Source: Podarcis melisellensis (taxonomy: Eukaryota). From it: a stretch of 64,000 nt of DNA. Below the pieces are notes generated by a model. That model worked only from the letters and a program-made list of their open reading frames with translations, did not search any database and was not told the DNA's origin. Location: the NCBI GenBank assembly GCA_964234715.1, contig OZ174276.1, one strand, 5' to 3'. This document shows, one piece after another, positions 412 to 19,340 of the stretch. Positions within the stretch are counted from its first letter, which is position 1. Every line of letters begins with the position of its first letter. The translations under genes were made by a program, and so were the position numbers.

Positions 412-2312
412 GAAAAGGGTGGCAGATGATAGATCTCGAATACATTTTGGGCTTTGGACTAGGCAGAGGTAGGCAAGATGTTCAGCAGGCAAGATTAAGG
501 TGGGCATTCACATACCTGCCCAAAAGAGAAAATTCCTCACTATAAAAGAGGGCACTGATTCACCAATGCTAATTTATATGGGTAGATGGAAATTTCAGAA
601 TAGTGACAGAGCTCAACCTCAGGAGGAAGGGGATGTCTCATGCCACACACTGAACTCTGATTCAGATGAAAGCTATTGTAGGACATATGTTTCTTCTACT
701 TGTTGTCTCAGTTATACAAAGCCATGACCTATTACTTTCTATAATTTCTCTACTTTAAAGTTGTTCAAAAATTCAAATGTATTGAATAAAGTGAAACTAA
801 TCTTTGAAGAGGACCATTGCAAATGAGAGGTTCCAATTTGCTATTCTCCATATCTACTAGTGTAGATATAATTATTACATACTTAATTACTGGTTAAGAT
901 TCAGTGTCTAATATGTCAGCCTGCCGGCTCTTATTCTGTAACATCATAGTTCCCATACTAAACCAACCCTTTGAAACAAATTGGCTAGACGTGTTAATTG
1001 ACAATCTGTTACCTGGCATTCAGTGTTGCATATGGTCTGTTTAGGCACACTTGAAAAGATTAGATTAAAATGGCTCCAATAAACTTTTTCCAGATAATAC
1101 CATCATGAAAAGCAAATATATTTTCCCTCCAAACCTTATTCAAAATTTTTAATGAGAGTGTCTTATCGTTGGTTGTAAGCAAGACACTGAGGCAGTAAGG
1201 CAAGTTCCATTGTTTCCCTTCAGATAGGTTTAGCATGGTTTATGAAAAGGTTTTAATCTGCGTGGTTACATTGATGCATATCAGTCTCAGAATCATGTTC
1301 CAGTTGCAGATTTCCTGCCAAACTAATGTCAACCCTAGTTTCAGGTCATTGCCATACAAGCTAAATCTGTTTACAGATCAGAAAGCAGCAAATTAATTCC
1401 AGGTTTCACTGCGATAATATGAACTAAGTTTTTGTGGTGACACTTGCGTAAACAAGTAAAAACATTGTTGCAGCCTTAAATAAATGAACTGCTTTGCATA
1501 AGCCCAATAAAAACCTAGATGTTTTCACTAATAAAGCACCATGTTAATACAAACGGATCTGCAGTGCAGTCCTATGCACATTTACTCATTATAGGAAATA
1601 AGTCCTATTGTGTCCAGCATGATCTATTTAGATGGTTTAAGCACGAGGTATTAATGTCTTCTATCATGAATGTTAGGTTTAAGTGTTTACTAGCTATATC
1701 TCTTTCTATCAGTGTTATATTTTAAACTTTCTAGATTTAAATCATTGCCCTCATCCAGCAGTCATCTTCTGCATGTTGGTAGGATTATTTGCATGTGTTG
1801 ATTCCAATGTAGGATCATCATGCAAGCTTTAAAAATGATGGAAAATCCATTATGTGCCTTTCCATTCACACAACCCGGTACAGAATAATTCTCTGATTGG
1901 AGGAAAAATAAGCCACGTGACACAGATACGAAGACTGGATTGGATTGACTTCCCTTCTAATATATAAGAGCACAAGTATGCAGAAATGAGGACAACCTAG
2001 GCAGCCTATGCGTGCCTGGTCTCTGCAATGTATGGAAGTTTACTTTAGCGCTCCAGTGTAAATGGCATACCTCCCACAGCTTCCACATTTGAATTTGATC
2101 AAATGTGGCCTGTTTTGAACATGCACTTTGGATGAAATCTTGTGTGTGTTTATCTTCCATTTTAAAAACTCTAACATATATAACACAACTGTGTGTGTGT
2201 GTGCGCATGTGCATGTGGATATATATATATGTATGCTTTCGTAGATTTTCACGGGTACAGGAATGCAGGTTTTGGTGTCCTCGGGTGTCTTCCCGTGTAA
2301 AAGTTGGGGTGT

Positions 2313-2356
2313 CTAGGCGACGTTTCGACGAGGTCTCACTCGTCATCTTCAGGCTG
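2313..2356 (-). ncRNA. Minimal type I hammerhead ribozyme motif (PLE-associated), - strand copy
   Basis: Exact reverse complement of the 2491-2534 motif; core spans 2352-2319. Confidence 0.65.
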
Positions 2357-2490
2357 GTGCTTTCGGCTTCTTGTTACTGGAACAGAGCAGGATCTCAGTG
2401 TTTGAGTTCCTATAAATACTGTTGACAGTATTTATAGGAACTCAAACACTGAGATCCTGCTCTGTTCCAGTAACAAGAAGCCGAAAGCAC

Positions 2491-2534
2491 CAGCCTGAAG
2501 ATGACGAGTGAGACCTCGTCGAAACGTCGCCTAG
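2491..2534 (+). ncRNA. Minimal type I hammerhead ribozyme motif (PLE-associated), + strand copy
   Basis: Core CTGAAGA (2495-2501), stem II GACGAG/CTCGTC (2503-2508 and 2515-2520), then GAAAC-GTC (2521-2528) with the palindromic ACGT. Predicted cleavage after C2528. Stem I is weak (about 2-3 bp). Confidence 0.65.
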
Positions 2535-3410
2535 ACACCCCAACTTTTACACGGGAAGACACCCGAGGACACCAAAACCTGCATATATATGTATGTATAT
2601 ATATATATATGGCATACTTTTTGCAATTTAACAGCTGACAGCAGTATTTATAAGCCAGTGTGACCTTCTAGGGTTCACTTTGCCCTGGAGTTTTCATAAA
2701 GCAAGCCTTGTCATTGGCTATTTCATTAACTAAAAAGCCATTGCTATGGCAAAGAACATGATTCTATTGCGTATCAGGAGTGAGTCAGTCGTATTTATTT
2801 TGAAATCCAAGTGAGATGCTGAGATGGCAGTGAAATGAGGCGGGGGTGTATGCTGAAACTGAACTGAACAGAAAGGTTTATTTATGCAGGGGTTTTGTTG
2901 TTTAATCAGTACCAAGATATAAAAATAGAAGAAGAAAGAAACTGCTGCTTCAGATCCTTCCGCTCATTAGGATAAATCACTATGTTTAAAGTGGGGGGCG
3001 GGGGATCACTTTTAATAGACGCTCCATGATAACTCTCTTTGTAAAGCCTTAATATTTCAGCCGATGATGATTCTGGAGAGAAATTACAGGCTTGGAATGG
3101 ACACTGGGTCAGTGCAAAGAAAAAGTAACGTGGTGACGTAATAGAGGGCAGATTTTCTACAGTGGTCCTCTCCCATTTACTAAGCTGAAGTAAACATAAA
3201 GTCAGAGTACGATCTGCTAGTTGCCTAAACAGGAGTTAAGCCTGTTGATAATCTCTTCACAGCTGTAGGTAAAGAGTACTTCAAAATCTGGGGTTGCACA
3301 CCAGGAATGGCAAGGACGTTCAAGAGAATGCCCAGTGGCTGGGTGTGTGCTTGGCATCTCCAACACAGAATACACTGCTCTTTTCTTCCTTGCTTCTTCC
3401 CTCTCTCTTT

Positions 3411-4203: not shown

Positions 4204-4432
4204 ATGGCAACAAAGGAGAAACTGCAGTGTCTGAAAGATTTCCACAAGGACATTCTCAAACCTTCCCCTGGCAAGAGCCCTGGGACACGCCCTGAGGATG
4301 AGGCAGAGGGGAAGCCACCACAGCGTGAAAAGTGGGCCAGCAAGATTGACTTTCTGTTGTCTGTGGCCGGAGGATTTATTGGATTAGGCAATGTTTGGCG
4401 ATTTCCGTATCTCTGCTACAAAAATGGCGGAG
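4204..4432 (+). CDS. SLC6A6: SLC6A6 coding exon 1 (MATKEK...YKNGG)
   Basis: Acceptor AG at 4191-4192, ATG at 4204, SLC6 motif [20 protein letters not shown] donor at 4433. Confidence 0.97.
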
Positions 4433-5072
4433 GTGCGTATTGTTGTCGCTTCCATAATGGTTTGGGATGTGGATAGCAGCTCCCTTTCATGTGAATGGGT
4501 GTGTGGGGAAGCAGGGCTGCTCTGAAGATGAATGAGATCAAGATTTAAAAACAACCGGAAGTGCTATTGGACTAATAGCTACTTTTCAGCTTTTTTTTTT
4601 TTTTTTTGAAAAAGGGGAAATTTGATTCGTATTAGCAAAAGCCAGTCACATATTTCCAGTATGCATTTCACTGCATTTAATTTGCTTTTTAAAAACTCTT
4701 ACAGCTGTTACATGCAGTACACTTTGTAAACAGCAAGTCATTAAATTCTGAGACATTGTAAAACAAGAAAACAATTGCCTTGAGATTTTACCTAATGTTC
4801 TAGTATGCAATGAAAGGAAACCATTCTGTTGCTCATTTTCTTTCACATTGTTCCCCATTTCTTAATCTGAAAATAGGGCATTTGTGTAACATATTTAAAG
4901 TCTGATTATTAATCTTTGCTCTCAAGTGGCAATTTCAGAACATGCTAACAAGGGCATGGGCCAGATTTCATAGTGATACTTAAATACCACCATCAGCTGC
5001 TACTCCATTAAGGGGAAAAAAAAGATTGAGTCATAGAATCTTCCTAATCTTCCTTCTGTGTTTTCTCTACAG

Positions 5073-5207
5073 GTGCATTTCTCATACCTTATTTCATTTT
5101 TCTGTTTGGGGGAGGTCTTCCTGTGTTTTTCCTGGAGGTGGCACTAGGACAGTATACCTCTGAAGGAGGAATTACATGCTGGGAAAAGATCTGCCCTATC
5201 TTCACCG
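5073..5207 (+). CDS. SLC6A6: SLC6A6 coding exon 2 ([45 protein letters not shown])
   Basis: AG/GT bounded, 135 nt, phase-compatible. Confidence 0.96.
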
Positions 5208-10861: not shown

Positions 10862-10994
10862 GCACAACGTATTGAGCTTGTCTTCAGGAATTGATGAGCC
10901 TGGTGTTGTCAAGTGGGACCTGGCACTATGTCTCCTCCTTGTCTGGGTGATATGTTTCTTTTGCATTTGGAAAGGTGTAAAGTCCACTGGGAAA
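10862..10994 (+). CDS. SLC6A6: SLC6A6 coding exon 4 ([14 protein letters not shown]...KGVKSTGK)
   Basis: AG/GT bounded, 133 nt. Confidence 0.96.
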
Positions 10995-11481
10995 GTAAGT
11001 GCTCTCAGCCTCTCCCTTTGCAATTATAACGGCCTTGTTTCTTGGAGCGCTAGTATTGGCAAGTCCAAAAAGAAAATGTTCTCTTTGGATCCAAGTTCCT
11101 CTCAGTCCCACAGTGCATCTCAAACTGGGGGGGGGGGGGGCGGACTTGAACAAACTTCCAAGCTTGCTCAATCTTTCCCACACTTTTTGCTCCATAGTTT
11201 CCAATAAGAGGGAAAATGAGGTGTTAAAAAGGCCCAGAGAAATTCAAAACATTACTCTGCCTTAACTTCTGTTCGATACCAGCAGAGCATAATCTGCCTT
11301 TGAATTCCACCCTCTTTACACACATACACTTTAGGTTTATATCCTAAGTGTTTAAATAGGTTCAGAAGTTAGTTTTATGCAGTGGTTTTGCACACTCTCC
11401 ACATCATCTTGGGCTTAAAATGATTGAATTGCCTTCTTACTTAGCAAAGGCTAAGTTCCCAATGTTATTTTGAACCTTTCT

Positions 11482-19100: not shown

Positions 19101-19227
19101 AGTTGGGTTTTGGTTTATCTGAATCGAATCAAGCATCTGTTCTGGAGAGGCAGAGGGGGTCTTGCCTTTGAGAATGAGCTGCTTACTTATTATGTCTTCT
19201 CCTCTTTCTCTCCCTTTATTCCTTTAG

Positions 19228-19340
19228 GTCCAGGCCTGGCCTTTATTGCCTATCCGAAAGCTGTGTCCATGATGCCACTCCCAACTTTTTGGGCTATTCT
19301 TTTTTTTATTATGCTTCTGTTGCTTGGCCTGGACAGCCAG
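19228..19340 (+). CDS. SLC6A6: SLC6A6 coding exon 8 ([13 protein letters not shown]...GLDSQ)
   Basis: AG/GT bounded, 113 nt. Confidence 0.96.

Follow-up and report, generated by a model that had tools for sequence, protein, structure and literature searches.

A perfect palindrome in Podarcis melisellensis is probably a young head-to-head insertion of two truncated Penelope-like element ends

How does a perfect inverted repeat with a hammerhead ribozyme motif in each arm come to lie within a lizard microsatellite? The question is raised by positions 2236-2584 of a 64-kb stretch of Podarcis melisellensis contig OZ174276.1 (GCA_964234715.1); this whole stretch is called the window here, and its numbering is used throughout. 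A first-pass annotation of the letters had taken the locus for a tiny fold-back product of a Penelope-like element (PLE) without an open reading frame (ORF). We consider it probable that 2236-2584 represents one young insertion event of a canonical endonuclease-containing (EN+) PLE of the Penelope/Poseidon type, consisting of two 5'-truncated terminal copies that lie head to head. Such an insertion was most likely dead on arrival, non-autonomous and without function.

The two arms of the palindrome (2263-2422 and 2425-2584) comprise 160 nucleotides (nt) each and are 100% reverse complementary, with only the 2 nt TG between them. An extra piece of 27 nt, in the following called the tail, adjoins the left arm, and the right arm has no tail. 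The unit is bracketed by a 13-nt direct repeat, ATATATATGTATG, situated within a (TG)n/(AT)n microsatellite, and the second copy of this repeat shares its first 2 nt with the last 2 nt of the right arm. Because of the microsatellite location the repeat alone is weak evidence of a target-site duplication and may have arisen by chance. In total 16 CpGs are present in the unit, at an observed/expected ratio of 0.82 compared to 0.22 for the window. The first-pass annotation had described an exact palindrome with a TG centre and without mismatches, a 13-nt direct repeat flanking it in an AT microsatellite, many intact CpGs and a tail on the minus-strand arm only. All of these features were recovered, the tail, noted as ~30 nt, measuring 27 nt. 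The BLAST check for copies that had been proposed was run within the 64-kb window (blastn) and yielded no additional copy of the unit, and no direct repeat of it is found there.

Each arm carries the string CTGAAGA-T-GACGAG-TGAGAC-CTCGTC-GAAAC-GTC, on the plus strand in the right arm and on the minus strand in the left arm (Table 1). A hammerhead descriptor (CTGANGA box, optional bulge, G-C-closed helix II of 4-8 bp, GAAA, paired 15.2/16.2, U-H) matched the window in the two arms only and had 0 matches in 200 shuffles, in agreement with the hammerhead core that had been proposed for each strand. The catalytic core is complete (CUGAAGA ... GAAA-C-G-U-C, i.e. C3-U4-G5-A6-N7-G8-A9, G12-A13-A14, A15.1/U16.1 and H17). 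Helix II has 6 bp (2503-2508/2515-2520) with a G10.1-C11.1 closure, U2502 is bulged after A9, and helix III is the palindromic ACGU with its palindromic 15.2-16.2 pair. By hammerhead numbering, C2528 is the predicted cleavage position. Helix I contains two pairs only, C2494-G2529 and G2493-C2530, followed by an A/C position; it is thus as weak as first described and shorter than the at least 4-5 bp expected of the minimal type I motif of PLEs. Minimal hammerheads of metazoan PLEs are characterized by a long helix II combined with a short helix I, by the two pairs G10.1-C11.1 and 15.2-16.2 (the latter palindromic), and by the lack of loop 3 (Cervera & de la Pena 2014, PMC4209133). All of these are present here except for helix I, where two Watson-Crick pairs are found instead of the usual 4-5; the motif of D. 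virilis also has two (PMC4209133). The Rfam hammerhead search that had been suggested gave no hammerhead family at E values up to 10, neither over 2 kb nor over 91 nt, and the models hence do not recognise the motif, likely as a result of the absent loop 3 and the weak helix I. When ribozyme regions of 66 nt and 115 nt were folded locally, helix II alone was formed; the minimum free energy structure was devoid of helix I and the stability was not unusual (z about -0.9 to -1.0).

The motif also contains the start of an ORF. Three ribozyme nucleotides, A9, the bulged U and G10.1, make up the AUG at 2501-2503, and from it the frame is open over 37 codons through the tail, 28 of them within the arm. 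In ORF numbering, the predicted cut falls after nt +28, the right arm ends at +84, and the left arm extends through the tail to +111. The arm is therefore composed of the last ~76 nt of the pseudo-long terminal repeat (pLTR) and 5' untranslated region, which include a TATA-like box and the hammerhead motif's 5' half, and of nt 1-84 of the PLE ORF. The description as an ORF-less pLTR product holds insofar as no functional ORF is left, but the arm is not pure pLTR, carrying 28 ORF codons (37 with the tail).

A phmmer search with the 37-aa peptide against 1.84 billion representative proteins resulted in two matches, P0001 and P0002; a Pfam search of the peptide gave no match. The top match, P0001 (830 aa), was rejected as spurious: the protein is repetitive, its matches are weak and span 26 residues, and in Pfam it has a neuraminidase-like match. 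P0002 (189 aa) is 68% identical to the peptide over residues 1-37 and continues into a domain that, by eye, is ~50% identical to residues 36-88 of Poseidon_Ac, a PLE of Anolis carolinensis. It is encoded on the public contig L001 (2989 bp), where it is followed by an overlapping 773-aa ORF with matches to RVT_1 (2e-17) and GIY-YIG (0.0015). The ORF possesses a GVYxIPCxxC...YIGxT core with two internal cysteines, as does the Poseidon_Ac translation, and its reverse transcriptase (RT) was confirmed by other libraries in a generic sense only. The N-terminal domain (L001:119-688) and the RT-EN part (669-2987) lie in two overlapping frames, which reflects either a frameshift in this copy or contig, or a real -1/+1 arrangement.

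On the DNA level, arm and tail align to L001:40-229 with 81% identity and free of gaps. Identical positions amount to 48 of 73 in the pLTR part, 42 of 56 between the cut site and +84, and 24 of 27 in the tail. The hammerhead is identical at all 34 positions, compared to 114/156 elsewhere in the alignment (Fisher p = 1.4e-4). The hammerhead motif is an inherited, conserved feature of the PLE. Judged from the alignment, hammerhead and tail appear to be conserved modules, which would fit their proposed roles. The ORF of L001 runs straight past the tail, which shows that the tail is ORF sequence and not filler. Further support for the PLE origin put forward in the first-pass annotation is thus provided by the identity to the 5' region of a contig with RT and GIY-YIG and by landmark positions shared with Poseidon_Ac. 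In place of the full-length parent with RT and GIY-YIG that had been sought, a relative with both domains was found on a public contig. The assignment to EN+ PLEs is made via homology to L001; RT and EN are absent from the 5'-truncated copy in the window.

Poseidon_Ac reportedly belongs to the Penelope/Poseidon clade of PLEs, with Arkhipova 2006 named beside Frangieh et al. for this element. Its AUG is located where stem II begins and its cleavage site at nt ~30, and RT initiates internally at two adjacent sites, the ~34-nt genomic tail corresponding to nt ~85-119 between them (Frangieh et al. 2024, PMC11167929). AT-rich DNA is cleaved, with both strands cut and extended, and the ribozyme cleaves in vitro only with the element's protein, a lack of RNA ends at the cut being reported for it in vivo (PMC11167929). 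The positions of AUG, cut and tail in the Podarcis insertion coincide with these landmarks within a few nucleotides. In both elements the hammerhead core straddles the pLTR-ORF junction, with the AUG built from the same three ribozyme positions. The cut is predicted after nt +28 here and lies at about +29/30 there. The tail starts at +85 in both, and its end at +111 falls on the Poseidon_Ac start sites 111-118. An AT-rich target and a weak helix I (2 bp here and 3 bp there, by eye) are also shared. In contrast, the sequence is strongly diverged. Helix II reads GACGAG/CUCGUC here and GCCUGC/GUGGGC there with pairing kept (by eye), the loop is 1 nt shorter, and the Podarcis locus is a 349-bp double fragment without RT or EN. 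Based on these positions, the outer ends +84 and +111 probably correspond to the two adjacent internal RT start sites described for Poseidon_Ac, the tail being the ORF sequence between them. Folding of L001 RNA around the RT start sites revealed no significant stem-loop (z = -1.2).

Sequencing reads over 2000-2800 were examined in three DNA runs, X2 and X8 (organism A) and X4 (organism B), and in one RNA run. The summed contig depth over 2243-2593 was thousands of times the flank depth in the three DNA runs; this sum is not a copy number and was taken only as the sign of a very abundant family. Beyond 2263, the +84 end, other copies continue with (AT)n in all three DNA runs and in the RNA reads, which marks +84 as the usual 3' end and (AT)n as the usual target; the (AT)n target is clear at the locus itself as well as in these copies. 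In read contigs of other copies that cross 2262/2263 the tail follows the arm, as it does at this locus. At the other end, reads of other copies match the left arm up to 2424/2425. Hence, the left copy exceeds the right copy by 2-3 nt, and the centre is family sequence instead of filler. Past this point, the other copies proceed into a common pLTR sequence, a part of which (ACCACACCCCC, sense) also precedes the TATA-like box in L001. The family itself is thus not palindromic.

This observation bears on the idea of a fold-back or miniature inverted-repeat DNA transposon with long terminal inverted repeats, whose likeness to a PLE would be due to chance. A palindrome with a flanking direct repeat would look like such a transposon. 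However, the other family copies run past 2424/2425 into different sequence, the two ends of the unit are unequal with the 27-nt tail on one of them, and the arm shares 81% identity with the 5' region of an element that has RT and GIY-YIG. We regard a DNA transposon as extremely improbable; it is already contradicted by family copies that are not bounded by inverted repeats.

Inverted junctions were detected at other break points as well, namely 2387>2462 (X2 and X8), 2288>2460 and 2321>2462 (with AGAG between), and head-to-head pairs are therefore recurrent. The 5' ends of other copies at 2460-2463 were observed five times (the three joints, and loose ends before 2463 in X8 and X4). These ends (mirror 2384-2387) lie 27-33 nt downstream of the conserved TATTTATA at 2429-2436. 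We infer that 2460-2463 may contain the transcription start of the pLTR, with TATTTATA as a candidate promoter box. The read data point to a PLE family that is very abundant and active now or recently in this genome.

One X8 contig of 2638 nt holds both flanks of the locus, with 2175 and 2616 separated by 64 nt rather than 440. This corresponds to an allele without the insertion (the X8 individual carries the same organism label, A, as X2). The flank contigs remain unbridged in X2, the probable source sample. The young age claimed in the first-pass annotation is in line with the CpG content, the empty-site allele in X8 and the high-copy family. The claim had been derived from the lack of mismatches between the arms and from the many intact CpGs; the perfect identity of the arms follows from an origin in one event as well as from youth.

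How were the two copies joined? Both outer ends have the position of RT-initiation ends, an AT microsatellite served as target, and at the centre the two 5'-truncated ends are joined. In the most likely course of events, the GIY-YIG endonuclease would cut both strands of the (AT)n microsatellite, in the way reported for Poseidon_Ac in vitro. The 3'-OH of the plus strand at 2235 would then prime complementary DNA (cDNA) synthesis from +111, and that of the minus strand would prime it from +84. The two antisense cDNAs might meet and pair by their 3' ends through the quasi-palindromic TTGA overlap at 2422-2425, for which self-pairing involves two Watson-Crick and two G-T pairs. Each cDNA would finally be completed on the other, giving two arms that are identical from birth.

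Several points weigh against the reading as a single insertion of two EN+ PLE ends. Two independent primings alone leave the shared truncation point (within 2-3 nt) unexplained; this point calls either for a shared 5' end of the RNA or for another mechanism such as snap-back synthesis. A shared RNA 5' end would account for the equal truncation and also for the ends at 2460-2463 in other copies, but there is no sign of such an end at 2425. The parent element was not seen in this genome, and L001 is only 81% identical. The GIY-YIG domain of L001 has a Pfam score of 19.2 bits, below the curated cut-off of 22.6. The comparison with Poseidon_Ac was made by eye. Finally, no displayed read or contig crosses the palindrome centre at 2236-2584. 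The palindrome consequently rests on the assembly and on an argument from the ends, and the reads give no direct proof of it.

The equal truncation and the identity of both arms would be explained at once by snap-back. Here, a single cDNA started from +111 would stop ~190 nt in, its 3' end would fold back or switch onto the nascent cDNA and copy outward, and the hairpin would be joined to the other side of the break. This route, which has the same PLE origin, also finds some support in a second locus with a nearly symmetric inverted junction (2387>2462, family positions 36/38). However, the stop of the right arm at +84, where most other copies end against (AT)n, would then be a coincidence unless a tail-bound protein blocks synthesis, and a centre of 2 nt is too tight for an intramolecular hairpin primer. 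Moreover, asymmetric inverted junctions exist (2288>2460, and 2321>2462 with its AGAG filler), and the Poseidon_Ac protein cuts and extends both strands in vitro (PMC11167929). We therefore treat snap-back as possible but rather unlikely.

The missing coverage of the centre also raises the suspicion of an assembly or library artefact, in which one arm is real and the second derives from a fold-back chimeric read or from the assembler. Perfect palindromes are a known artefact of long-read libraries, and PLE structures trouble assemblies (Craig et al. 2021, PMC8557442). Yet with a fold-back read, tail and left flank should also appear in mirror image; instead, the right arm stops at the canonical +84 without a tail, and it is followed by the correct right flank, the one that directly adjoins the left flank in the X8 empty allele. 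In addition, a direct repeat is present on both sides of the unit, independent runs contain inverted junctions of this family at other loci, and the flank contigs of X2 are unbridged, as expected for a filled site. An artefact is accordingly judged very improbable.

The head-to-head insertion of two PLE ends can be compared to other inverted retroelement products. In L1 twin priming, both target strands prime reverse transcription and an inverted segment results within a single insertion. There, the same RNA is primed a second time at an internal position, which leads to an inversion with deletion or duplication. The Podarcis locus, in contrast, is perfectly palindromic, and its two canonical 3' ends point outward. 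Complex PLE insertions contain an inverted 5'-truncated copy, a tail of 30-40 bp that is often found at one end only, and show a (TA)n bias (Craig et al. 2021, PMC8557442). The adjoining inverted 5'-truncated copy, the one-sided tail and the (TA)n site are all shared with these insertions (PMC8557442; Evgen'ev & Arkhipova 2005), and the fold-back PLE product suggested at the outset is supported in its head-to-head architecture with a one-sided tail. The locus differs in being a minimal symmetric case, with copies of 160-163 nt and no full-length unit between or beside them, and in its tail of 27 nt, slightly under 30-40. Animal non-LTR retrozymes (Cervera & de la Pena 2020, PMC7229834; Li et al. 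2026, 10.64898/2026.07.22.740005) are likewise short, non-autonomous, related to PLEs and equipped with a type I hammerhead. Retrozymes are head-to-tail tandem repeats able to give circular RNAs, whereas a single head-to-head pair is found here, with one sense ribozyme per transcript and no tandem dimer. Membership in the retrozymes was rejected, given that only two copies, in inverted orientation, are present and that the unit is not directly repeated in the window. A literature search on PLEs in lacertids gave nothing specific, and lizards are not mentioned in the 2026 retrozyme preprint (10.64898/2026.07.22.740005).

Published minimal motifs of PLEs cleave poorly in vitro (PMC4209133). In the RNA run, reads of the family were present on both strands, with zero depth in the unique flanks. 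The reads stem mostly from other copies, as the majority letter at 2389 is T and not A. No pile-up of RNA-read ends was seen at 2528/2529 or at the mirror position 2318/2319 in this single run, which is not decisive. As far as can be told from the motif, ribozyme activity of the family is plausible but unproven. At the locus itself, the head-to-head arrangement has the consequence that on either strand the antisense arm is transcribed before the sense ribozyme arm. The complete hairpin folds at -337 kcal/mol (z = -43), compared to about -12 kcal/mol for the local ribozyme region. With a perfect antisense always made first, the motif in read-through transcripts should be locked in double-stranded RNA, and according to the folding model ribozyme action in such transcripts of the 2236-2584 locus is unlikely. 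A free ribozyme would be expected only in transcripts from the putative internal promoter. Of the proposal that a ribozyme is encoded whichever strand is transcribed, the motif on both strands remains; its action is called into question by the hairpin energy, the lack of an Rfam match and the lack of RNA ends at the cut.

RNA reads leave the family sequence at 2353 (family position 70; 6 reads) and at 2355 (family position 68; 7 reads), between CAG and CUGAAGA in the sense direction, and pass into two different unrelated sequences. It looks like the CAG just upstream of helix I is used as a splice acceptor in chimeric or PLE transcripts. These departures recall the Penelope intron of D. virilis, which ends at helix I (PMC4209133).

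The coordinates of the unit and of the neighbouring gene are compiled in Table 1.

Table 1. Features of the palindromic unit and of the adjacent transporter gene (window numbering)
Feature	Position	Strand	Remark
Left 13-nt repeat ATATATATGTATG, candidate target-site duplication	2223-2235	.	Low-complexity sequence
Tail, PLE ORF nt +85 to +111; outer end is the candidate distal RT start site	2236-2262	-	24/27 identical to L001:203-229
Left copy, 5'-truncated PLE end: pLTR part and ORF nt 1-84	2263-2425	-	Family sequence reaches 2424/2425
Minimal type I hammerhead of left copy; ORF ATG 2346-2344; predicted cut after C2319	2319-2352	-	Descriptor match
Palindrome centre TG, junction of the two 5'-truncated ends	2423-2424	.	
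Right copy, 5'-truncated PLE end; stops at ORF nt +84, the usual family 3' end	2425-2584	+	
TATA-like box TATTTATA of the pLTR	2429-2436	+	Mirror 2411-2418 (-); conserved in L001
Minimal type I hammerhead of right copy; predicted cut after C2528	2495-2528	+	34/34 identical to L001
First 28 codons of the PLE ORF	2501-2584	+	Peptide 68% identical to P0002 residues 1-37
Right 13-nt repeat ATATATATGTATG	2583-2595	.	Overlaps right arm by 2 nt
Start-codon exon of SNF-family (SLC6) transporter gene	4204-4437	+	1.6 kb downstream of the insertion
Further exons of the SNF-family transporter gene	~5072-5137, ~10923-10997, ~19227-19289	+	Approximate boundaries

The insertion is located 1.6 kb upstream of the start codon of an SLC6 gene. 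The first exon of this gene contains the start codon and an N-terminus of the taurine-transporter type, and the gene is probably a taurine-transporter-like member of SLC6 (SNF family). The effect of the insertion on this host gene is most likely neutral. An exapted functional RNA was nevertheless considered, either a hairpin or microRNA-like precursor or an active ribozyme, which would regulate the neighbouring SLC6 gene or silence the PLE family. The perfect 160-bp hairpin with its exceptional folding energy, matches to Rfam microRNA models (E about 1e-8), the position on the same strand upstream of a start-codon exon and the RNA of the family on both strands in one run would suit such a function. 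However, the microRNA matches reach 46-50 bits against a gathering score of 88 and spread over many unrelated families, as for any long hairpin. The insertion is absent from the X8 individual and hence not conserved, the unique flanks have zero RNA depth, and no read ends are found at the predicted cut. A role as exapted RNA is thus very unlikely.

Three further observations concern the surroundings of the unit. A 129-aa ORF at 1957-2346 (minus strand), which starts with the left arm's PLE AUG and extends past the tail into unique flanking sequence, is most likely a chance extension. In the right flank, 18 nt at 2635-2652 are 89% complementary to the palindrome centre and share CAGTATTTATA; this similarity was set aside as probably due to chance (blast E = 0.76). 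The window contains 132 N, none of which touches the palindromic unit.

A more far-reaching interpretation combines these elements. Head-to-head PLE mini-dimers would be traces left in vivo by target-primed reverse transcription from both sides, in which each target strand uses one of the two internal start sites. The unit would also act as a small divergent promoter that gives outward transcripts with an uncaged ribozyme, and the read-through hairpin would feed small-RNA silencing. Each arm indeed retains the AUG and the complete hammerhead, together with the TATA box of the pLTR and, around 2461 (mirror 2386), the putative start. If this were true, one outward transcript would point at the SLC6 start-codon exon downstream, and read-through transcripts would give a 160-bp hairpin with possible small-RNA silencing of the PLE family. 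As a whole, this combination is speculative and we think it improbable.

Inverted 5'-truncated copies, one-sided tails, a (TA)n bias and hammerheads in the pLTR have already been described for PLEs (PMC8557442). The locus is therefore an ordinary product of a known element class. Its value lies in being a clean, minimal, polymorphic and recent example that ties RT start sites mapped in vitro to a product in vivo. As DNA, perfect inverted repeats of 160 bp are fragile, and they cause difficulties for assemblers and read mappers; annotators should expect many of them in this genome. PLEs are the least understood class of retrotransposons, and how their integration proceeds once the first priming has taken place is still to be worked out. 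The outer ends of the insertion lie on the RT start sites mapped in vitro for an Anolis element, from which this family is about as distant as another lizard lineage would be. Such an agreement speaks for internal initiation as a general feature and suggests priming of both target strands in vivo.

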